A DNA stretch of 64,000 nt from Neoconidiobolus thromboides FSU 785. Its lineage: Eukaryota; Fungi; Entomophthoromycota. Shown piece by piece: positions 7,147 through 46,608 of the stretch. A program made the translations under genes and the position numbers. The notes below the pieces were generated by a model. It did not search any database. It was not told the origin of the DNA and worked only from the letters and a program-made list of their open reading frames with translations. The stretch is from positions 1-64,000 of the forward strand of contig MU626340.1 of NCBI GenBank assembly GCA_025603075.1, given 5' to 3'. Positions within the stretch are counted from its first letter, which is position 1. Each line of letters starts with the position of its first letter.

Positions 7147-9661
7147 ATGCTTGTATTAGATTTGAATAATAGCTTATCAACAGACGGAATTAAAAAAGAG
7201 AAAGATTATCAAGATAAAAAAAACGAAATTATTAACGCTTTATCAACACTTGGTAATAGAAATTCAATTGATCTTATACATTGAAAATAATGAAAAATAG
7301 GTTTCTTTTATGCTCAAAATCATGGAATAGAAGAGAAAGAGATCAAACAGTTATTTAAAATAGTAAATATGTTTTTTTGTAATAGTTTTTTTATTAAATA
7401 TATTCTAGGCAAAACAGTTTTTTAATGAAAAAGAAGAGATAAAAAACAAGTACCCCTTCACAGGAAATGAGGGATATAGTCGACTTGGACAAGAAAGGTA
7501 ATTAGTCTTAATAATTTTAAATAGTATACTTAATAAGTTTAGATTATCTAAAAAATACCAATTAGACTATAAAGAAGCCTTTAATTTACCATCCAACTTT
7601 AAACAACTTGAACATCCACTTCCAGAAATATTTGAAAATGATAAAGCGTTTTTAGACACTTTTACAAAGGTATAAATTCTAGTTGATAACCAGACTTTTA
7701 GTAATATTAAAATAGAAATGTAATCAAACATGTCAAACTATATTAAGAGAAATAGCTCTATCTTTAGATTTAGNNNNNNNNNNNNNNNNNNNNNNNNNNN
7801 NNNNNNNNNNNNNNNNNNNNNNNNNNNNNNNNNNNNNNNNNNNNNNNNNNNNNNNNNNNNNNNNNNNNNNNNNNNNNNNNNNNNNNNNNNNNNNNNNNNN
7901 NNNNNNNNNNNNNNNNNNNNNNNNNNNNNNNNNNNNNNNNNNNNNNNNNNNNNNNNNNNNNNNNNNNNNNNNNNNNNNNNNNNNNNNNNNNNNNNNNNNN
8001 NNNNNNNNNNNNNNNNNNNNNNNNNNNNNNNNNNNNNNNNNNNNNNNNNNNNNNNNNNNNNNNNNNNNNNNNNNNNNNNNNNNNNNNNNNNNNNNNNNNN
8101 NNNNNNNNNNNNNNNNNNNNNNNNNNNNNNNNNNNNNNNNNNNNNNNNNNNNNNNNNNNNNNNNNNNNNNNNNNNNNNNNNNNNNNNNNNNNNNNNNNNN
8201 NNNNNNNNNNNNNNNNNNNNNNNNNNNNNNNNNNNNNNNNNNNNNNNNNNNNNNNNNNNNNNNNNNNNNNNNNNNNNNNNNNNNNNNNNNNNNNNNNNNN
8301 NNNNNNNNNNNNNNNNNNNNNNNNNNNNNNNNNNNNNNNNNNNNNNNNNNNNNNNNNNNNNNNNNNNNNNNNNNNNNNNNNNNCTAGTTGATAACCAGAC
8401 TTTTAGTAATATTAAAATAGAAATGTAATCAAACATGTCAAACTATATTAAGAGAAATAGCTCTATCTTTAGATTTAGATAAAGATTACTTTATTAAAGC
8501 ACATCAATATGAAGACAAATCAGGTAGTATAATGCGTATTTTACATTACCCACCATTATCCAAAGATATTGATAGAAATACAATTACTCGTGCTGGAAGG
8601 TAAGTTGAACTACCTTTTTTATATCAATAAATTAATAATCAATTTCTATAGTCATTCAGATTATGGTACATTAACTTTATTATTCCAAGAAGATAGCGAA
8701 ATTGGTGAAGAAAATAGTGGATTACAAGTATTGAAGGACCAAAATAGTGATGAGTGGTTAGATGTACCTTATAAAAAAGGAAGTATTATAGTAAATGTTG
8801 CGGATCTGTTATCTATTTGGACAGAAGGTAGATTAAGATCAGCTAAACATCGAGTAGTTTTACCAGAAAATAGCAAACTAGATACTAATCGGTAAGCTCT
8901 TGTTTTTATTTTAAGAATGAGGATTAACGAATTTNNNNNNNNNNNNNNNNNNNNNNNNNNNNNNNNNNNNNNNNNNNNNNNNNNNNNNNNNNNNNNNNNN
9001 NNNNNNNNNNNNNNNNNNNNNNNNNNNNNNNNNNNNNNNNNNNNNNNNNNNNNNNNNNNNNNNNNNNNNNNNNNNNNNNNNNNNNNNNNNNNNNNNNNNN
9101 NNNNNNNNNNNNNNNNNNNNNNNNNNNNNNNNNNNNNNNNNNNNNNNNNNNNNNNNNNNNNNNNNNNNNNNNNNNNNNNNNNNNNNNNNNNNNNNNNNNN
9201 NNNNNNNNNNNNNNNNNNNNNNNNNNNNNNNNNNNNNNNNNNNNNNNNNNNNNNNNNNNNNNNNNNNNNNNNNNNNNNNNNNNNNNNNNNNNNNNNNNNN
9301 NNNNNNNNNNNNNNNNNNNNNNNNNNNNNNNNNNNNNNNNNNNNNNNNNNNNNNNNNNNNNNNNNNNNNNNNNNNNNNNNNNNNNNNNNNNNNNNNNNNN
9401 NNNNNNNNNNNNNNNNNNNNNNNNNNNNNNNNNNNNNNNNNNNNNNNNNNNNNNNNNNNNNNNNNNNNNNNNNNNNNNNNNNNNNNNNNNNNNNNNNNNN
9501 NNNNNNNNNNNNNNNNNNNNNNNNNNNNNCCTATCTTTCCTATTGGTCATAAGGAGAATGAAATTAATGAAAAGACTGTATGTAATATTGGTCCTAGTCC
9601 TTTCACTTTTGGAGAAACTGATGCTGTTTATTTGAATCGACGTTTAAAGGAAACTTATTAG
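7147..9661 (+). CDS. 2-oxoglutarate/Fe(II) dioxygenase (IPNS/DIOX_N-like), multi-exon, interrupted by two assembly gaps
   Basis: Exons encode LGFFYAQNHGI, MRILHYPP, HSDYGTLTLLFQ (HxD), RSAKHRV (distal His) and the C-terminus YLNRRLKETY*. Confidence 0.9.
7774..8383. other. Assembly gap (610 N), probably spurious
   Basis: The 95 bp before the gap (7679-7773) are repeated exactly after it (8384-8478). Confidence 0.9.
8935..9530. other. Assembly gap (596 N) inside the dioxygenase gene
   Basis: Run of N; coding frame of the dioxygenase resumes at 9531 (…IFPIGHKENE). Confidence 0.95.
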
Positions 9662-9960
9662 TTAAAGAGTATCTGTGCTTTAAGATGACATTATATAAAT
9701 AAAGCTATCTTATATTACTAATTGCTTTAATTGTTTTTCATTTGATTGTTTTGATAGTTTTTATATAGGATTGTTATTACTTTATTAATATATGTATTTA
9801 AGAAGATATCCAATTGATATTCCTACACAACTTGGCTTGGTATCTTTAATCCCCTTTTTATTGGTTAATACAAAATATCATTACGTGGTAAAATAAATAA
9901 ATATAAATATCAAATATTATTCTTTTAACTTATTTTTAAATTGTTTTTATAAAGTAAAAT

Positions 9961-11055
9961 ATGAATAATAACGAAACCATAATAATCACTGGTGCCTCTG
10001 GTTTATTAGGTAGAAAAGTTTACCAGGTAATTAAGTCGGAAGGCAAATTTAAAAACAGTAAGAATTGAATGAGAATTAAAAATGTTTAATATTGATTTCA
10101 ATTACTAGTTATTGGTCTTGCTTTTTCAAGAGCTGAAGATGATTTGATTAAAGTAAATAATTATAGTAAATAAATAAAATGAATATTGATATATTTGATT
10201 CAGATTGATTTAACTAATACCGAACAAGTAAAGCAATTATTTGATACTTATAAACCCAACGGTAAATTAATAATTGAGCTTTATTCTATTAAAAACAGTA
10301 AATTAATTCCCTCTTATAATTAGTTGTTATCCATTGTGCAGCTGAAAGATTTCCAGATAAAGTAGAAAGCAATCCAGAAGAAACAATTAAAGTAAAAATT
10401 TCAAATCAAACTTATTTTACATAATAATTAATCTAAAATATTCTTTTAGTTAAATGTACAGGCTACTAAAGAACTAGGATTATTATGTAAACAATACAAT
10501 ACACGATTAATTTATATATCTTCAGATTATGTATTTGATGGCGTAAAACCACCTTATTCTCCTAATGATTTACCTAATCCATTGAACTTTTATGGTAAAA
10601 TTTATTGATAATAAGTTTAATATGAGTGTAAAATAATAATGAGTTGTGTTTATTTTAATTTTAATTAGGCAAAACAAAACATGAAGGTGAAAAAGAATTA
10701 ATTTCAATTGATTTTGATTTGGTAATTTTAAGAGTTCCAGTATTGTAAGTACTTGTTTTATAATATGACAAATTGTTATTTTTTATATTGATATTAGATA
10801 TGGTGAAACAAAATATTTAAAAGAATCTGCTATTAATTGTTTAATTGAATCTGTTAAAGTAAGCTCATTTTTATACTAATTATTGTGATTTTATATTTAT
10901 CATCATTTTAGAGTTCAGATAAACAAATTAAAATGGATCATTTAATGCCAAGATATCCTACTTATGGTAAATATATCAATATACTAATATTATTAATTAT
11001 TTATTTATTTGTTTATTATAGTTGGAGATATTGCTAAACTATGTAAAAATTTAAG

Positions 11056-11610: not shown

Positions 11611-12017
11611 ATTATTAATAAATTTTAGTGGCTAATAAGCGGAAGTTCATTGATTTATAAAACTTACATGTTGAATTTTTATGCTATTATTTTTTATGCT
11701 ATTATTTTAATTTAATTTTAATGTAGTGAGGATTTTTTTAATTTTGTAATGTTACTTATTAAAAGATTTTGATATTATTAATTTTGTAAGTTCTATTAAA
11801 ACACTTAAATAAAGAAAATGTCAAATTAAATAAGACTCATTTTACATTGAAACTTGAACCGGTAATATATATCAATTAATTAATTAATTAGTAATATTCA
11901 AATGAATTACTTTAAATAGCAATAACCAGTGGATTAGCTTTCATAATATCATAATAATATTAATAATGATAAGTTTACTTGTTTTTTTTCTATTTTTTTA
12001 TTTTTTTAATTAATATA

Positions 12018-13000
12018 ATGTATAATCAATTTATCCTGATATCATTACTATTCACAACCTTAATATTAAGTAAATGTAATGCTCCTTCCTCGACTTCAAA
12101 CATCATTTCAAAGTATAGCAAACCGAAACCAAAATTTTCTCAATTAACTATTAATGTCACTAATACTAATAATAATAGTACTGAAGATACTAATAGTAAT
12201 GATAGTCGAATAATTGGAGGATTTACAGTAACCACCAGAAAATATCCCTTTCTAGTATCCATTCAAGATAAGAGTATAGGTCATTTGTGTGGAGGAACAA
12301 TCATGAATTCTCAATTAATAATAACAGCAGGACATTGTTTAATTGAAAGAGAAAAAGAAAGTATGAGAATAAAATATGGTGATAATGAATTAAAAAAGAT
12401 GAAATATGAATTAAGTATATTACAATTAATAATTCATCCTAATTATAATAAATTATCTAATGGTGAAGTTATTAATGATATTGGCTTAATTCAATTTAAT
12501 AAAGAAGATGGAGTAGGCGATGGAGATTTAAGTTTTATTTCCAATATATCTAGTAATGATTTGACATTGGACAATGAATTAGTTAAAGTTGTTGGTTGGG
12601 GATATACCGAAGAAGATGGTATTGTTAGTAACGAATTAAATGAAGTAATAGTTATTACAATTATAATAAATTAAATACTAATATTCAAATTAAATAGGTT
12701 GATTTGACTACTTTAAATACGAATACCTGTAAACAACACTGGAAATATATTAATTCATATAACACTATTTGTGCTTGGAAAAAAGAAGGTGGAAAAGATG
12801 GATGTCAAGGGGATTCAGGTGGTCCGTTATTATTATTAAATTCCAATACAAATGAATATACTATTATCGGTATTATTTCTAATGGTATTGGATGTGGTGA
12901 AAAAGAAATGCCTTCAGTTTATACTCGAATTTATTATTATAAATATTGGTTACAACAAGTTACAATGAATTACGACTTAGAAGATTTAATATTTTATTAA
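12018..13000 (+). CDS. Secreted trypsin-like serine protease (S1A); intron 12645-12697
   Basis: Signal peptide, S/T/N-rich propeptide, R-IIGG activation site, LCGG, TAGHC (His), DIGLI (Asp), GCQGDSGGP (Ser), with Asp in the S1 pocket (KDGCQG). Confidence 0.97.
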
Positions 13001-37819: not shown

Positions 37820-38303
37820 ACACCAGTTTTGTTTTACCCTTCTTTAAGTTTATGGGATCCTTTTTTGCTTTTTTTTAACTATCTGTGACGTAATTTTTTT
37901 GAAATAAATTAGGTTAGAAAGATTCTTTTATGCATCAATGTTCATGTTTTGGGGTTTTATTATAATATAATAAGATCAACATATAAATCAATACTTTTGT
38001 TTCCTCAACTCATAGTACTATTTATAAAAATATATCAAAGCAAGAAAAATATATTTTAAAATAGTAACATTAAATGGTTTTGTTAATATCATTATACTAT
38101 CTGTCAAGTCTATTTTTCCAAAAATGTATCGAATTTTAATGCTAGTTTAATTAAAATAACGACCATTGCTCAAAATGTTCCAAGCCATTAAATTTCAAGG
38201 CTTTTAATGACAATGAATAGTTAGATTACGTCACTTAATGTAAAGCCTCGAAATTAATTTTGATATAAATATACATCAAACTAATGATGGAAATGCTCAA
38301 AAA

Positions 38304-38705
38304 ATGATTAATATCTTAAAAATTAGTTTCGTTGCCTTTTTATTAGCCTCTCTTCACGCCAATGATGAAAGTAAAATAAAATGTAATAGTATGTTTGGTA
38401 GAACTGCAAATGGTGATGGTACAAACACTTATAGCTTTTCATGTAGATGTACTGCCGATAGTAATAAAAGCACAGTACAAACTTATTGTGACTATAGGGG
38501 AAGTGAAATCAAATCTAACTGCTCTGGTAATCCTTTAAAATCCCCTGATAATGAATTAAGTTTACAAATCGCTAATTGTACAAATGGTATGGCCTTAGTT
38601 TCGCTCAAGTTTAAAGATGGTAGTTCAAAAACAGCTAATTTCCCTCTTTACTGTATTGGAGTAGGTATTGCTGGTTTAGATTGTAATGGTTCAGCAACTG
38701 TTTGA
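38304..38705 (+). CDS. Small secreted cysteine-rich protein, ANGDGTNTYSF family copy 1 (133 aa, 8 Cys)
   Basis: Intronless ORF with a hydrophobic signal peptide; motif and Cys spacing shared with three downstream paralogs. Confidence 0.9.
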   Translation: MINILKISFVAFLLASLHANDESKIKCNSMFGRTANGDGTNTYSFSCRCTADSNKSTVQTYCDYRGSEIKSNCSGNPLKSPDNELSLQIANCTNGMALVSLKFKDGSSKTANFPLYCIGVGIAGLDCNGSATV

Positions 38706-39002
38706 TTTATTAAATAAATTTAATCTAGAATTTTGTAACAAAATTATCACTCTTTTTGTTTTCTTAGTTCAGACATTACAAAAAATTAATCCCTAAATTA
38801 ATAATTTGATATATTAATAATTTGATATACTAATAATTAGATATAAATATAACCTTGTTCTAAATATTACAATGTTTAATAGACATACCTATATATATTA
38901 CTTTTAAGTAATACATTTGTAAATATACACTTCAATTTTATTAAAATTATTTCATTTATCAACTTTTATTATTTGATGTAATTTTAGTAATAAAATTTTC
39001 AT

Positions 39003-39109
39003 AAATGGGGATGTATTTTTGTGTCTAAGAATTTTACTAACAAATTTTCCGTTTAAATAGCACTTAAAAAATGGAAAAAAATAATGAAGTCAAAAAAATA
39101 CTCCCAAAT
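39003..39109 (-). mobile_element. MITE-like element copy
   Basis: Full termini; direct repeat AAAT/AAAT. Confidence 0.9.
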
Positions 39110-39569
39110 ATTATATCAAACTCATAACAAAGCTTACTATTTTATGGATGATGCTATTATAGATCAACAAAATGGAAGTAATTATGAATATCAAGTTATT
39201 TATAATTCTGACGATAATTTTTAAGAGATGTAAAATACTATTAATAAATACACAATTAAAGATGTTAGTTCTATTTAACTTAAATTAGTACCTAATAACC
39301 TTTTGTACTATGAAAACAGAAAATTAATCAACACAAATCAAATGTAAGATTCTTTTTTAAAGCTAAATATAGCTTTTTTATGCATTTTAATCTAAATTTA
39401 ATTTTTTATAAATAATGCAAGAATTGCCATTAAAAATGGACAATTATCTACTAGAATAATTAATATTAGAAAAATCATTAGTTCAGTTAATAACTGAAGA
39501 GTATAAAAGACCAAAAATATCTATTTTTCCTTTTATCAAATTTTAAATATCACATAAATCTTAATCGAA

Positions 39570-39992
39570 ATGAAAGCTACTTTATTATTATCTTTATTAT
39601 CTCTAATCAGTGGTAGTCTTGCTGTATATGGCGAAAAACCAAAATGCAGTAAGCGTGAAATCAGATGTGAAACTGACTTTGGTAGATTAGCTAACGGTGA
39701 TGGTACAAACACTTACTCTTTTGGATGTAAATGTAAAATCGAATATAATGGCGAGGCTGCTGAACCAATCTGTAAGATTACTGGTAAAAATATCACCAAT
39801 CAATGTCAAACTGGTACCGCATTCCTTATCTCCAATAATGTAAGCTTCCAAGTTAATGAATGTAATCTTGGCAATGCCACCACTACTGTTACAATTAAAG
39901 ATGCTGCCCCAAAGAAAGTATTTGTTACCCTTGATAAATGCACCCCTCAGGGTGTTGCTGGCTTAAATTGTGTTGGTACATCAAAATTTTAA
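39570..39992 (+). CDS. Small secreted cysteine-rich protein, ANGDGTNTYSF family copy 2 (140 aa, 9 Cys)
   Basis: Intronless; signal peptide; TATAAAA at 39502; same motif and Cys spacing. Confidence 0.92.
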   Translation: MKATLLLSLLSLISGSLAVYGEKPKCSKREIRCETDFGRLANGDGTNTYSFGCKCKIEYNGEAAEPICKITGKNITNQCQTGTAFLISNNVSFQVNECNLGNATTTVTIKDAAPKKVFVTLDKCTPQGVAGLNCVGTSKF

Positions 39993-40506
39993 ATAGTTTT
40001 TATTTGTTTTAGCATAATAATAAAATTAATATCACATGATATAATCTTTTTTTTGGACTTTTTATTTTAAAATTATTTATAAGAGTAATGATTTAATAGT
40101 GTATTCCTTTATGAGTTTATAAGTGCAATCAAGAGTAATTGTTTGCACAAACTATTGGGAAAAGGTTGTAGATTTTGAATCGAATGAAATATGTAAGTCT
40201 GTTGATATTTACCAAAACATTGTCCTCGGTTGTGCCTGTAACTTCATCTAAAAGCATTTTATTTAAAATAAGTGTTATTTAAGTTGATTATCTATTACTA
40301 TTTATTCAAGAAAAAAACTTGAATTTAAAAATGAGTTTACTTTAATATGAAAAGTAATTGACCCATTAATTTACTTTTATTGTTGAAATAATTTACTTTT
40401 TAGTACATTAAAACATAGCAATCAACAGATTAAAAAGATTTAGTTTTAAATGAACTTTGATATTTTTCCAAAGTTGTTTTTATATTAATAGCAAAAATAA
40501 AATAAT

Positions 40507-40611
40507 ATATGGGGATGTATTTTTGTGTTTAACAATTCTACTAATAATTTTCCCACTTAAATGTGCTTAAAAGATGGAAAAAATAATGAAGCCAAAAAAA
40601 TATCCCCATAT
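40507..40611 (-). mobile_element. MITE-like element copy
   Basis: Full termini; ATAT/ATAT flanks. Confidence 0.9.
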
Positions 40612-40705
40612 AATATAATGTTTGATAAATCTACAAATTATAGTAAGGAACACCTTTCGAAAGCCCTAACAAATGTTAAGGTTTTTTGGAAAAGCATAAT
40701 CTAAT

Positions 40706-40811
40706 ATATGGGAATGTGTTTTCTTATCTAAGAATTTCATTAACAATCTTTCCACTCAAATAGCACTTAAAAAATGTAAAGAAATGGAATTAAAAAAATA
40801 CATCCCTGTAT
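40706..40811 (-). mobile_element. MITE-like element copy
   Basis: Diverged family sequence; ATAT/GTAT flanks. Confidence 0.8.
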
Positions 40812-41695
40812 GTTTTTTCTGAAAATGGCTCTATAACTTCTAACTTTTAATGACATCTTAATTAATACCAAAACATTAGTTTCCATATACTTTAAGCCTC
40901 AAGTTCTAAACTACTGTGAAATATCGCTTTGTCAGTCCTATGGTTAATTATAGCATAACAATCGCCTAAGCTGTTGTGTTCTCGAGTTCAGAGAAAATCA
41001 ATCCCATGTTCTTAGTTTGATTTGTTATGAGAACTTCTAGCTCCATCCCAAAGAATATTATCCTCTCATTTTGATATTTATACTTTTCAGAGTATAAAAG
41101 AGTTTACAGAGTATAGTAGTTCGAGGCTTTTTAACTGAATTATTCCCTGATATCTCGAACATTTAATAAAGCCACTAGGTTTTCTTAATAGTATTTTACG
41201 TAGATTTCACATTAGTATTGTCTATTCTATTTGTCTTATATAGCTTGTAACCTATTACGTGCTATTCCTCATAATCCAAGCCTATCTTAGTCACATAAAC
41301 TAAGACCTTTCGACTTATAGTGTAGTCAACCCAGCAATAGCTGTTCTTGACTCCAAACCCTGAGTATCAGATTTCACACTACTTAGTTAATGAATTAAGA
41401 TTATATTAAACAAATGTTAATAAAGGTGTTATTGATTAATTAAGCATATAACCCAAACTGTCTTGTACTATTTTAAATTTAACTAAATAAAGTTCCAAAT
41501 ATTAAAAAAATTGTAAACATAATAAACAAACTAAAAATAAGTAAACCGTTATAAAAGCTTCAAATATTAGATATATACCAAAAAACATAACTAAATGAAT
41601 TTTACTTGAATTTAAATGAAGCATTATTTAGGTATAAGTTGACTTTTAATATTTTATTAGTTATAGTTGTTTTGCTATAATAAATATTTAAAAGT

Positions 41696-41802
41696 ATATG
41701 AGAGTGTTTTTTTTGACTTCATTATTTTTTCCATTTTCTAAGCGCCATTTAAGCGGAAATTTTGTTGGTAAAATTCTTAAACACAAAAATACATCCCCAT
41801 AT
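41696..41802 (+). mobile_element. MITE-like element copy (young subfamily)
   Basis: Two differences from the reverse complement of 29055-29161. Confidence 0.9.
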
Positions 41803-42395
41803 GCTATGGATATTTTATTGCTTTATTTTCTAAGTGAATTTTACAAACATTTATTTAATAAAAGTTTAATTCATTAAATAAATAGTTTAAAACATAAGGT
41901 TTATTGTATATAAGCCAAATTAGACTAGTTAATTATACAAGTAGCAAGATTTAATTACACATATATTTGAAGATAATGACTTAACAACTAATTAAACCTT
42001 TTATCGTGTTTAGGTTGACAACACTGGCATAATATCAATAATTTACAGAATGTTGGTAATATTTAATAGGTTTGTAGGGAAATATCACTTATTTTCATAT
42101 CTTTCTCATTTTTATGCAATATAAAATCAAAAAATTATCAATCAATACTGAAGCAAAAGAACACTCTCGCATGGAACTCAAAATTTGATTATTCTCTTGT
42201 TCTAGTAATCTAATTTAATTAAAATAGAGGTTTTCAACTATCAAATATTGTTTAGTGAGTTTAAAATATCATTAATTATATATATACTATTATTTTTAGT
42301 ATTTGATAATTTCATAGTTGTAATGATTTTTTCTTTATTTTTAAATAATACTTGTTTGAATAAATATTATATTTAGTTTTAATTATAAAAATAAG

Positions 42396-42494
42396 ATATA
42401 GGGATGTATTTTTGTGTTTAAGAGTTTTACTAACAAATTTTCCGCTCAAATAGCGCTTAAAAAATGGAAAAAATAATCAAAAACACTTCCATCT
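42396..42494 (-). mobile_element. MITE-like element copy with a small internal deletion
   Basis: Core ttttccgctcaaatagcgcttaaaaaatggaaaa. Confidence 0.85.
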
Positions 42495-43002
42495 ATTTTA
42501 ATAGAAACTACTTTATTTAATATGCTAATTGTTGCAAAACTACCGTTCTACCGTTCACAAAATTATTCTAAGTCTTTATTAAGTTTGAAATATTTTTATT
42601 AAGCTTGAGATATTTTTATCATTAATATGCATGGATATTGTTATATAATTAAACTATTTATAAGTTTGGTGGTAATATTGATTTATGCTTATAATACTGT
42701 TTTACATTTTGACGTTAATTAGGGGTATTTTTTCACTTAGCCTGAAATAGTGCTTAATTAGCTTATTATGTTATAAAAATAGCACAGACTTTATGCAAAT
42801 AAAAAATAGAATTTGGAAAGAATAGATAAAGCAATTCTCTAGAAATAAATTATTTATGTATTAGAATAATTATACTTCATGAGATCATTTAATTTAATAA
42901 GCAGTTGAAGGGTATAAAATGTCAAAAATATCCATTTCATTTTTTTATCAAACATAAATACATATCATCTCAAATTTACATAATATCTAAATATAAATCA
43001 AA

Positions 43003-43422
43003 ATGAAAGCTACTTTCGTATTATCTTTATTATCTATAATTGGTGGTAGTCTCGCTACCTATGGTGGAAAAAAGTGTAATAACCATGAAATAAAATGTGA
43101 GTCCAACTTCGGTAGATCAGCTAATGGTGATGGTACAAACACATACTCTTTTGCATGTAAATGTAAGATTCAATATGACAGTGATTCAGCAGAACCCTAC
43201 TGTAAGAATGTTGGTCAAAACATCTCCAATAACTGCTCATCTGGGAAATCATTCCTCCCTGCAAGTAACTTAAGCTTCCAAATTAATGATTGTAATCTCA
43301 ACAATGCCACTACTACGGTCGAAACTAATGGTGGTAATCCAAAAAAGGTCTTTATTTCCCTTAGTAAATGTACCCCTCAAGGTGTTGCCGGGTTAAATTG
43401 TGTTGGTTCATCTAAATTTTAG
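43003..43422 (+). CDS. Small secreted cysteine-rich protein, ANGDGTNTYSF family copy 3 (139 aa, 9 Cys); closest to copy 2
   Basis: Intronless; signal peptide; TATAAAA at 42913; same motif and Cys spacing. Confidence 0.92.
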   Translation: MKATFVLSLLSIIGGSLATYGGKKCNNHEIKCESNFGRSANGDGTNTYSFACKCKIQYDSDSAEPYCKNVGQNISNNCSSGKSFLPASNLSFQINDCNLNNATTTVETNGGNPKKVFISLSKCTPQGVAGLNCVGSSKF

Positions 43423-44287
43423 ATATTGTTTGTATTTTTAGCATTGTAATAAATCGATATCTCATAACTTTAATTTACTTTCATTTCATAGAATTATTTT
43501 TGAAATTTAAATTCAAGGCTATTCGAGAGATAATATTACGTTTTTAAATTTTTCAAAGGGCAAAGTTTTCAATTTATTAATAGGATACTAGTTATTAATA
43601 AGGGACAAAGGACAAGGATCAATGATTCCCTGTCTCAATACACCTGAATAAGATCTAGATATAGTTAAGATAAGTTATCAAGTTATGGAATCTTTCATTT
43701 GATGAAAAGAGAAAGTACTGAGGGATTTATGTTTCTACGGTAAATTCCAGTTTTGTGTGAGTTTTATAGCTTCTCTAAAGTTGGCAATACATATTAGATG
43801 TTTTTTAAATGTCAGGGACTCATAGCCTTCATAAGTCAATTCTCTTATACTTTGTTATTAGGTTCATAATTGTTTGCATTATTTTTCTAAAAAAGAAACG
43901 TCTTTAGTAAGTTTTTTAAATAAAGTTTAATGACTTATTAAATGTCTCATCACTACAATCTGAAAATTTCCTTAAAAATTTAACTCAAAAAATTTCAATA
44001 CCTAAACTGTGAATTCAGCTTTGACAGAATAAAATAATTGAAATCCTCGGATATTATTGTTTTATAAAATAACAATAATTTTAACTTAATTTAGTTAACT
44101 ATCATTATTTTAAAGTAGAAAAATTAAAAATAGAATAAAAATACGAAAAATAAATAAATAAATAAATAAATACAATACAAAATTGAAAAGTAGTGAGTTT
44201 GTGATAAAATAGTAGCTGTGAAATTAGGAGATTTTTTAGAAGTGTATATAAACAAAACAAAACAAACAAAACAAATAAAACAAAGCT

Positions 44288-44704
44288 ATGAATGGTTTGA
44301 AGCATATATTTTTATTTTCATTAGCAATAGGGATCTTTGGTCTAGATAATTGTCCTCAGCAAGATCCAATAAATACAAGCTGTCAAACATTATCAGGTAG
44401 AGTAGCAAATGGAGATGGTACAAACACTTACAGCTTTTCATGTAGTTGTATATCAAGTTACAGAAATGATACAGTTCAGAATACATGTGGACAAAGTGGC
44501 CCAAATATTCAATTCCAATGTTCAGGTTCACCAGTTATATCCTATAGTAGTACCTTTAGTTTAGAAATTGTTAACTGTGCAAATGATATTGTATCTACTA
44601 CCTTTATGCTAAATGATAATACTAGTAGAAGCATCATGTCCCCATTTAATTGCGCTGCAGCCGGAACTTCTGCTTTGCAGTGTAATTCTACTTCTACTAT
44701 TTAG
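44288..44704 (+). CDS. Small secreted cysteine-rich protein, ANGDGTNTYSF family copy 4 (138 aa, 9 Cys)
   Basis: Intronless; signal peptide; same motif and Cys spacing. Confidence 0.9.
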   Translation: MNGLKHIFLFSLAIGIFGLDNCPQQDPINTSCQTLSGRVANGDGTNTYSFSCSCISSYRNDTVQNTCGQSGPNIQFQCSGSPVISYSSTFSLEIVNCANDIVSTTFMLNDNTSRSIMSPFNCAAAGTSALQCNSTSTI

Positions 44705-44859
44705 ATTTTACCATAGTTATTATCATTATTATAATAAAAGCATTATTTTTATATTCAAATCTAAACTTAAATTTACAATTGTTTTTTTTAGAATAGAATT
44801 GAATTTATATAGTAAAAGATTTATTTTATTATAAGTAAATAAGAATAAATTAATGTTAA

Positions 44860-46608
44860 CTATTTTTTAGGAACATAATTAATAATTGCTACTTTACCCA
44901 TAATAATATGAGGAGACATATGGCAATGCATAAACCAAGAACCTGGGTTATTAGCTTTAAAACGAATGGCATACCAACCACATGGGAGATCATCTGGATT
45001 AAGTGAGTTATCATCCATGTGTTTTAAATTTGAAAACATATCTATATGATTATCAATAGGAGCCATTCTAGAATTAGTTTGATTTAAAGGTTGACCAATT
45101 TCTGGGATGTCAGTTATAAAGTGGGTATAGGTATCTCTTAATACTGGAGTATTTTTAGTAGTTGCTAAATAATCGTCGATTTTTGGACCATCAACTTTTG
45201 GATCATAAAATCCATTGCCATGTGCAACAACATAGAATGAATGACCATGTAAATGCCATGGATGTGCTTCACATGGTAATCCAGGGGGCATTGTATGTTG
45301 GACAATAATTTGAACATTGTCGCCTTCATTGATTTCATAAATACCTTTAGTTAACTTATATTTCCCTGATTCCATATCGTCTACTAACACAGTATTTCTT
45401 TGTTGATTTTCGACATCATTTACAAACCATCTAGCTAAGTCATTTGGTTTTCTCAACGTCACTATCAAGTTAAGCTCTTTATCAGCTTTCTTGGGCACTG
45501 GATAGTAATGAGTTGATAATCCTTTATTATACCATTGAGAAGTAAACAACTTAGATTCTATCCAATGCGAATATTCATATTTGAGTCCAGGAACTTGTTT
45601 GTCTGCACGTATCAATGAAGCAGTACTTTTTGCACCATCATAATGAAGGATTGATACGCCATTTTTTGCTACTGGTTTACGTGCTTCAGGTCTTAATTCA
45701 TCGCTTACTTGAGTATACATGTAATAGTTATCCACTTTTTGATCTGCTCTTAATAATACTGAATAGCGTTGACCACTACTTAATTCTACTCTGTCAACAT
45801 TAACTGGATCAACTAAAGTTCCTTCAGCTTCGATGACAGTTAAATTGTGGTTTTCAATATTAAAAGAGAATAATGAATATCCGTTTGCTGCAATCAATCT
45901 AATTCTGTAAGTTTTATTTGCCTTTATATTTGTTACACTAAAGCCATTATTAAATCTTTTTAAATCTTCAGCAGTACCACCATTAAGGTTATTATCCCAT
46001 TTTCCATAAGTTCTACCATTAGTTAATATACTTTGCGATTGATTACTGAATCTAAATGGGGCGTTATTTAAGCCATACATTAATTCCTCGGTTGTTTTAT
46101 GCCATCTTTCAGACAACATGATAGTTAATTCTTCATCATATTTATATGCTGGATTGAATTTTACAATATCATCCCAAATTTCCTTTTTATCTTTAATAAT
46201 CAATGCACCATAGATGTGTTCGGCATCCATATCAGTATGTGCATGATACCAGTATGTACCGCTTTGGTCATTGACATTAAATTTATACGTGTACTGTTGA
46301 CCTGGCTGAATTGGATCCTGAGTTACCATTGGTACACCATCAGCTTTAACTGATCTTCTTTGTGTTATTCCGTGCCAGTGAATAGTTACATTTTTATGTA
46401 GCTGGTTGGTTATGAGGACTTGGATAGTATCACCGACTTCAGCTGTTATCTGTGGTCCTGGAAAACCACCGTTAATTAATACGCCATCAACCACATAATT
46501 ATCGGGTGCTAACTTTGCTTCTGTAAGCGTCCATTTCTGTTCAACTAATTTACATAACAGAGTTGGAAATAAGCATAGAGCACTAATAGCGAACTTTTTA
46601 ATGAACAT
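44860..46608 (-). CDS. Secreted three-domain multicopper oxidase (laccase/ascorbate-oxidase-like), intronless, 582 aa
   Basis: Signal peptide; copper motifs HWHG, WYHAH, HPWHLHGH and WFMHCHMSPH. Confidence 0.96.
   Translation of the reverse strand: MFIKKFAISALCLFPTLLCKLVEQKWTLTEAKLAPDNYVVDGVLINGGFPGPQITAEVGDTIQVLITNQLHKNVTIHWHGITQRRSVKADGVPMVTQDPIQPGQQYTYKFNVNDQSGTYWYHAHTDMDAEHIYGALIIKDKKEIWDDIVKFNPAYKYDEELTIMLSERWHKTTEELMYGLNNAPFRFSNQSQSILTNGRTYGKWDNNLNGGTAEDLKRFNNGFSVTNIKANKTYRIRLIAANGYSLFSFNIENHNLTVIEAEGTLVDPVNVDRVELSSGQRYSVLLRADQKVDNYYMYTQVSDELRPEARKPVAKNGVSILHYDGAKSTASLIRADKQVPGLKYEYSHWIESKLFTSQWYNKGLSTHYYPVPKKADKELNLIVTLRKPNDLARWFVNDVENQQRNTVLVDDMESGKYKLTKGIYEINEGDNVQIIVQHTMPPGLPCEAHPWHLHGHSFYVVAHGNGFYDPKVDGPKIDDYLATTKNTPVLRDTYTHFITDIPEIGQPLNQTNSRMAPIDNHIDMFSNLKHMDDNSLNPDDLPCGWYAIRFKANNPGSWFMHCHMSPHIIMGKVAIINYVPKK

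Follow-up and report, generated by a model that had tools for sequence, protein, structure and literature searches.

A sequence-orphan family of secreted eight-cysteine proteins with predicted Alt a 1-like barrels in Neoconidiobolus thromboides

Four small genes stand in tandem between positions 38,304 and 44,704 of contig MU626340.1 of Neoconidiobolus thromboides FSU 785 (assembly GCA_025603075.1), a fungus of the Entomophthorales. The window, meaning the whole stretch of DNA that we analyzed, comprises the first 64,000 nucleotides (nt) of that contig. They form a single tandem cluster within a multigene family that is restricted to this species. Taking the models and searches together, this family is best described as a sequence-orphan, transcribed and selected one whose predicted barrels resemble those of Alt a 1, a type not reported from its fungal lineage in the literature searched. 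The explanation that we prefer, by a modest balance of belief over doubt, is that the family consists of secreted binding proteins with an Alt a 1-like barrel, the fold being predicted and the role putative.

Results

All four open reading frames (ORFs) of 133–140 amino acids (aa) with signal peptides that a sequence-only reading of this DNA had picked out on the plus strand were found again (Table 1). Signal peptides were called from Kyte–Doolittle hydrophobicity together with a cleavage-type site. The N-terminus of each of the four products is hydrophobic (best mean of 2.4–2.7 in a 10-residue window), and in 10 of 10 intact members of the family the hydrophobic N-terminus is followed by a small-residue cleavage-type site, giving mature sizes of 111–146 aa. 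The public gene model of gene 1 (P0004, 104 aa) begins at Met30 and so is without the signal peptide. The cysteine spacing given earlier, C-x19-C-x-C-x12-C-x10-C-x18-C-x24/25-C-x9-C, was reproduced exactly in genes 1–4; an extra ninth Cys in genes 2, 3 and 4, between the signal peptide and the eight-Cys scaffold, had gone unmentioned. The products are also as divergent between the conserved elements as had been described, with identities of 32–37% to copy 1 overall and of 66% for copy 2 versus copy 3 in an alignment of the four. The domain contains N-glycosylation sequons, and neither a catalytic motif nor an enzyme family can be recognised in it.

Profile searches of the whole assembly (24.6 Mb in 799 contigs; the window has a guanine-cytosine (GC) content of about 26%) located the family in 12 places; it has at least 10 intact members and 2 decayed ones, spread over several small clusters. 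Outside the window these searches returned an intact copy on contig C63 that reads ANGDGTNIYSF and a decayed copy beside it that retains the motif and has lost nearly all Cys. Contig C61 has four copies, of which three lie within 10 kb of one another, C10 has one, and C26 has a fragment with a stop codon. All eight scaffold Cys are retained in each of the 10 intact members. The odd ninth Cys is present in half of the members, namely genes 2–4, where it precedes the scaffold, and two C61 members, where it is in a C-terminal tail. Some public models at these loci also seem flawed: the one for a C61 member (P0009, C61:8870-9187) ends at 59 aa, and P0010 (C63:50796-51059) is a spliced gene model laid over a decayed copy in which nearly all Cys are lost.

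By sequence, the family matches nothing described, in line with the sequence-only reading, which could place it in no family that it knew: neither Pfam, the PDB sequences nor 1.84 billion protein representatives yielded a known family. Nothing in Pfam scored above threshold for any of the 10 members. Matches to CBM_6 (E 0.052), Fn1_2 (0.025) and C2-set_2 (0.21) were sub-threshold and mutually inconsistent, and we rejected them as noise. Hydrophobin, cerato-platanin, CFEM and LysM gave no Pfam match at E ≤ 10 in the 10 members and were not returned by the fold searches either. A word-index search of 5.8 billion proteins returned the proteins of the window and no others. When the 1.84 billion representatives were searched exhaustively with a profile, nine matched, eight of them from the N. 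thromboides genome itself. The sole outside relative is a truncated soil sequence of 107 aa (SRR5689334), 34–39% identical, which reads FGRIASGSGTNTYYF and has ASGSGTNTYYF, without the motif Asp, at the motif position. The taxonomic range found among the representatives is therefore one species plus one soil fragment. The pattern ANGDGTN[TI] matched 100 stretches in metagenome contigs of the Joint Genome Institute, none of which was a relative. A search of the ESM Atlas by features gave no usable match, and the Atlas's own low-confidence model gave meaningless matches only.

The word-search collection includes proteins of Entomophthora muscae, Massospora cicadina, Conidiobolus coronatus and Basidiobolus ranarum. 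We assume that the representative library includes the same four species, both collections being drawn from about 15 billion public proteins. If this assumption holds, the family would be either missing from the annotated proteins of those species or past the reach of HMMER.

The motif GRxANGDGTNTYSFxCxC is unchanged in all four window genes, and its codons differ among them in the way that the sequence-only reading had noted. The motif Ser is encoded by AGC in copies 1 and 4 and by TCT in copies 2 and 3, and the codons for Ala, Asn, Gly, Thr and Tyr likewise vary. The C63 copy has CGT rather than AGA for the motif Arg and also differs in its codons for Gly, Thr and Cys. A genome-wide count, which had been proposed as a check, gave six sites for the back-translated motif in the 24.6-Mb genome and none for a reversed-pattern control. 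However, the invariance is confined to a subfamily. The motif is kept by only five intact copies and one decayed copy, whereas five intact eight-Cys paralogues at C61 and C10 have VKGA[DN]GKDQYVF, SHPNNEIKYRM or nothing recognisable at that position. Because the C61 and C10 members carry other sequence there, we read the motif as the mark of a subfamily and not of the whole family. The deepest shared pattern, common to the subfamily, the soil relative and one pair of C61 members (a and d), is G-x-x-G...Y-x-F-x-C-x-C, which resembles a signature for turn formation and packing. The invariance of ANGDGTNTYSF across five old paralogues suggests an additional, subfamily-specific contact.

We modeled two members with AlphaFold2. 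The mature product of gene 1 (model 1; ten-sequence alignment) gave a predicted local distance difference test score (pLDDT) of 94.9 and a predicted template modelling score (pTM) of 0.84, and a C61 member (model 2; eleven-sequence alignment) gave 90.6 and 0.82. The two proteins are only about 27% identical. The two models are all-beta folds of eight strands, in which the connecting turns are short and only strands 3 and 4 are separated by a long loop. They agree with the disulfide-locked, beta-rich fold that had been expected from the letters. In model 1, NGDGT is a five-residue turn (residues 14–18) between strand 1 (2–13), which ends in FGRxA, and strand 2 (19–31), which opens with NTYSFxCxC. 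The suggestion that NGDGT is a beta-hairpin turn thus has its counterpart in the predicted first hairpin.

Six of the eight Cys fall exactly on cross-strand hairpin partners, as 5/27, 25/40 and 95/105 in model 1 and as 7/28, 26/41 and 96/105 in model 2. This three-pair register holds despite unlike loop lengths and Cys spacings (x19 versus x18; x9 versus x8), the shorter Cys spacings of the C61 members accompanying shorter hairpin loops. From the strand register we infer a disulfide map of C1–C3, C2–C4 and C7–C8 across hairpins. C5–C6 would be the fourth pair by remainder, because the other six Cys sit on cross-strand partners.

When models 1 and 2 were compared with 48,161 PDB representatives, three solved folds of the Alt a 1 (AA1) type, PevD1, Alt a 1 and Tsp1, came within the top 9 for model 1 and the top 6 for model 2. 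Each of them spans 83–88% of the domain. Foldseek, whose use on AlphaFold models had been recommended, gave its best ranks to Alt a 1 and PevD1 with either model (E about 0.02, probability 0.80–0.98). On a second look at the Foldseek list, ranks 1–3 were PevD1 and two Alt a 1 entries. For model 1 the ESM Atlas returned an AA1-like cluster, with template modelling (TM) scores of 0.58/0.53. The lack of a known family is therefore upheld by sequence and gives way at the level of predicted fold, where the nearest barrels are those of Alt a 1, PevD1 and Tsp1.

Four public runs were compared with positions 38505–44504 (6,000 letters), which cover genes 1 and 4 in part. RNA-type contigs from two runs touch all four genes, and RNA-type depth is zero in the intergenic bins 39305–39504, 40105–40304, 41905–42104, 42705–42904 and 44105–44304. 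These contigs cover 38505–38794 in gene 1 and 42974–43391 and 43216–43473 in gene 3, and in gene 4 there is contig depth within 44305–44504. Gene 2 is intronless, because a 506-nt RNA-type contig is colinear with 39559–40041 of the genome without differences, and it has a 5' untranslated region of 11 nt. Genes 2 and 3 make polyadenylated mRNAs, since contigs of one run (X6) end in non-templated A's about 20 nt downstream of an AATAAA in each case: one stops at 40039 and continues with 24 A's absent from the genome, and the other stops at 43473 and continues with 21. With contigs over all four genes and poly(A) tails on two, the ORFs are expressed.

Pieces of genes 1–3 are also contained in an RNA-Seq library from a fish-gut metagenome. 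Near-identical copies of the array (38200–44800) occur in runs under several organism names, in that fish-gut RNA library and in an air metagenome. Because the array copies in these varied runs differ mostly synonymously, the species or close strains of it are widespread. The between-run differences number 22 synonymous versus 7 non-synonymous, and within the motif they are synonymous without exception. The ratio of non-synonymous to synonymous rates (dN/dS, Nei–Gojobori) comes to 0.30 between genes 2 and 3, and two C61 pairs give 0.13 and 0.24. The family is under purifying selection. In most other paralogue pairs dS is close to or past saturation, and the duplicates are therefore old.

Table 1. 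Positions of the array genes, their motif stretches and transcript signals, and neighboring features in the window
Feature	Position	Strand	Description	Basis
Gene 1	38304-38705	+	133 aa, secreted-type eight-Cys protein, mature ~12 kDa	ORF and Cys spacing
Gene 2	39570-39992	+	140 aa, secreted-type, eight scaffold Cys and ninth N-terminal Cys	ORF
Gene 3	43003-43422	+	139 aa, secreted-type, 8+1 Cys, 66% identical to gene 2	ORF and alignment
Gene 4	44288-44704	+	138 aa, secreted-type, 8+1 Cys, acidic, isoelectric point 4.05	ORF
ANGDGTNTY coding stretch, gene 1	38406-38432	+		Pattern search
ANGDGTNTY coding stretch, gene 2	39690-39716	+		Pattern search
ANGDGTNTY coding stretch, gene 3	43120-43146	+		Pattern search
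ANGDGTNTY coding stretch, gene 4	44405-44431	+		Pattern search
TATA-like box	39500-39509	+	AGTATAAAAG	Sequence upstream of gene 2
5' end of gene 2 transcript	~39559	+	11 nt upstream of ATG	Contig start, preceded by sequencing-adapter letters
Gene 2 AATAAA and poly(A) site	40017-40039	+	47 nt past stop codon	Run X6 contig
Gene 3 AATAAA and poly(A) site	43449-43473	+	51 nt past stop codon	Run X6 contig
Multicopper oxidase gene	44860-46608	-	Secreted, intronless, 582 aa	ORF
Miniature inverted-repeat transposable element (MITE)-like repeat	39005-39115, 40502-40617, 40708-40783, 41708-41807 (inverted), 42391-42480		Array spacers

The array is followed by a secreted multicopper oxidase gene, which has at least 12 paralogues in the genome, four of them 76–79% identical (at C35, twice at C63, and at C28). 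The MITE-like repeat fills the array spacers with copies of 76–110 nt that are 75–92% identical, some of them inverted. Its RNA-type contig coverage is very deep with many joints, and for this reason the repeat is probably multi-copy genome-wide and present in transcripts. Elsewhere in the window, positions 8001–10000 have 13.6% GC and ORFs that mirror each other on opposite strands (7730-8428/7738-8436 and 8917-9552/8924-9550), which are probably low-complexity AT-rich sequence and not genes. An ORF at 11979–12674 (plus strand) has a trypsin-type serine protease domain (Pfam E 1.9e-20) and may be another secreted protein gene nearby. The window also carries an Atg22 gene, whose product is 100% identical to an NCBI protein of N. 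thromboides FSU 785.

Discussion

Each intronless gene encodes a signal peptide and a single domain of about 110–120 residues with N-glycosylation sites. On our preferred explanation, the domain would be an eight-stranded up-and-down beta-barrel with four disulfides, whose nearest fold is the Alt a 1 (AA1) fold of PevD1, Alt a 1 and Tsp1. The proteins would be exported and have an extracellular, non-enzymatic binding role. In the five-copy subfamily, FGRxANGDGTNTYSF would form the tip and flanks of the β1–β2 hairpin. The odd-numbered connections of an up-and-down barrel (the 1–2 tip, the 3–4 loop, the 5–6 turn and the 7–8 turn) share one end, and because of this both conserved elements should lie on one face. 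The long 3–4 loop bears conserved Gly, Ile and Cys, and the 7–8 turn bears the conserved G-x-[AS]-[GA]-L. If the barrel is a plain meander, the motif tip would stand at the same end as the C-x3-G-x-[AS]-[GA]-L-x-C hairpin of strands 7 and 8. The result would be one conserved recognition face on a protein whose remaining surface diverges fast. The unpaired ninth Cys may bond to wall material or, in the manner of Cys30 in Alt a 1, to another copy of the protein. With low confidence, and reasoning from AA1 proteins, we suggest that the family acts on the surface of conidia or hyphae, where these meet host or substrate.

We judge it fairly probable that the fold is shared with AA1 barrels; true homology to AA1 is less probable than that. 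Several observations weigh against the link. The AltA1 profile (gathering score 27.5 bits) has no match at E ≤ 10 in the 10 members and is silent in a six-frame search of the whole genome too, as it is in control genomes. The family profile found no meaningful match among PDB sequences. For model 2, AA1 was not returned by the ESM Atlas. In the fold comparison the S-layer protein SlaA, a tetravirus capsid domain and OmpX barrels score just 1.5–3 Z units lower. Finally, the topology, the disulfides and the argument that the conserved elements sit at the same end of the barrel were all read from strand order.

These points lend some weight to a reading in which the resemblance is generic. The family would then be a lineage-specific or diverged one with a common sort of barrel and no evolutionary or functional tie to Alt a 1, and a small hydrophobic molecule may be carried inside the barrel as in lipocalins. 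There is no sequence signal to AA1, and structural scores reach moderate values; lipocalins, GFP-like barrels and outer-membrane barrels make up the remainder of the lists, and the family is limited to one species and one soil fragment. However, all three AA1-type folds rank high among 48,161 chains with 83–88% domain coverage, and two different aligners concur on AA1. The proteins of both groups are fungal, small, of the secreted type and comparable in size, and the C-terminal C-x9-C hairpin pair is common to the family and PevD1. We therefore hold a generic look-alike to be a serious alternative, though on balance a doubtful one.

A bolder version of kinship is that the family split off very early from the rest of the Alt a 1 superfamily and has survived in an entomophthoralean fungus. 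In that case the AA1 barrel would be older than the Dikarya and not an invention of two ascomycete classes, and the hairpin would be a new site for recognition of the insect host or its cuticle. The target might, for instance, be a defence protein of the glucan-recognition or thaumatin-like kind, much as plant PR5 is blocked by PevD1 and Alt a 1. We consider this improbable.

It is less probable still that NGDGT is a calcium- or sugar-binding loop and that the proteins are Ca-dependent lectins or adhesins. The sequence-only reading had likened NGDGT to calcium-binding loops of the Dx[DN]xDG type, and the segment is indeed predicted to be exposed at a hairpin tip and is rich in Asn, Asp, Gly and Thr; binding of wall or cuticle glycans would fit a secreted fungal protein. 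However, the loop has a single acidic residue, lacks the Dx[DN]xDG pattern, and is replaced by SGSGT in the nearest outside relative. An essential metal site is disfavored because the Asp is missing in that soil relative, and other members bear quite different tips on the same scaffold. Gly-rich NG and DG pairs are ordinary formers of tight turns. No Ca-binding Pfam family was matched in the 10 members, and the weak CBM_6 match, in 1 of 10 members, reaches 14.3 bits versus a cut-off of 28.9. The calcium idea is thus weakened, and the lectin, adhesin and toxin roles that the sequence-only reading had offered are conjectural. Least likely of all, and by a long way, is that the proteins are accessory partners of the neighboring multicopper oxidase in one functional module: gene 4 and the oxidase gene lie tail to tail only 155 nt apart, but none of the 12 or more oxidase genes is beside the C61 or C10 loci and the nearest ones on C63 are 24–30 kb off, so we treat the adjacency, which is not repeated at other family loci, as chance.

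The barrel of the Alt a 1 type is a fold already recognised in allergens of ascomycetes and in effectors of plant pathogens. If our preferred explanation is right, the range of this fold widens to an early-diverging, insect-associated fungus, or else the fold has arisen again independently. To our knowledge, almost nothing is known at the molecular level of what entomophthoralean fungi secrete at the host interface, and small proteins with a constant scaffold, an invariant hairpin and a variable surface would be tractable ones with which to study it. If the resemblance is merely generic, what we describe is a well-documented species-specific secreted family, of a kind common in fungi and of local interest only.

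Among known systems, the ligand-binding barrels of the lipocalin/calycin type are similar in size and are likewise eight-stranded, up-and-down and antiparallel, as predicted here. They appear in lower Foldseek rows (probability 0.2–0.3, TM about 0.2), have another disulfide pattern, and unlike them our models have no C-terminal helix. Tsp1 of Trichoderma virens (7CWJ) is a weaker match than PevD1 and has no sequence similarity to the family. It is a root-induced protein of a plant-associated ascomycete.

The nearest structural match is AA1 itself (PF16541), represented by PevD1 of Verticillium dahliae (5XMZ), Alt a 1 of Alternaria alternata (3V0R, 4AUD) and MoHrip1. AA1 proteins are housed in the wall of the spore, from which germination releases them, and they bind both phenolic ligands and the PR5 proteins of plants (PMC6322577, PMC8539034). 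They are confined to Dothideomycetes and Sordariomycetes according to the literature (PMC6322577), whereas N. thromboides belongs to the Entomophthorales, outside both classes; in the literature searched, no paper links Alt a 1 with Zoopagomycota in the sense of such a family there. Unlike the plant-associated fungi that carry AA1, N. thromboides is soil-dwelling and infects insects. The family also differs in having no detectable sequence similarity to AA1, eight scaffold Cys versus four, and an invariant hairpin motif without a described counterpart there.

The likenesses are in build. AA1 and the family are both made up of small fungal proteins of the secreted type, which carry a signal peptide and have a single all-beta barrel domain of about 110–130 residues; for the family the barrel is a predicted one, and so is its stabilization by disulfides. 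PevD1 has four conserved Cys (C70, C84, C125 and C135) in two intramolecular disulfides, and the C-terminal C-x9-C of the family matches its C125/C135 in spacing and position (PMC6322577). Alt a 1, which sits in the spore wall, dimerises via Cys30, and genes 2–4 carry a Cys N-terminal to the predicted barrel, where Alt a 1 has this dimer-forming residue (PMC8539034).

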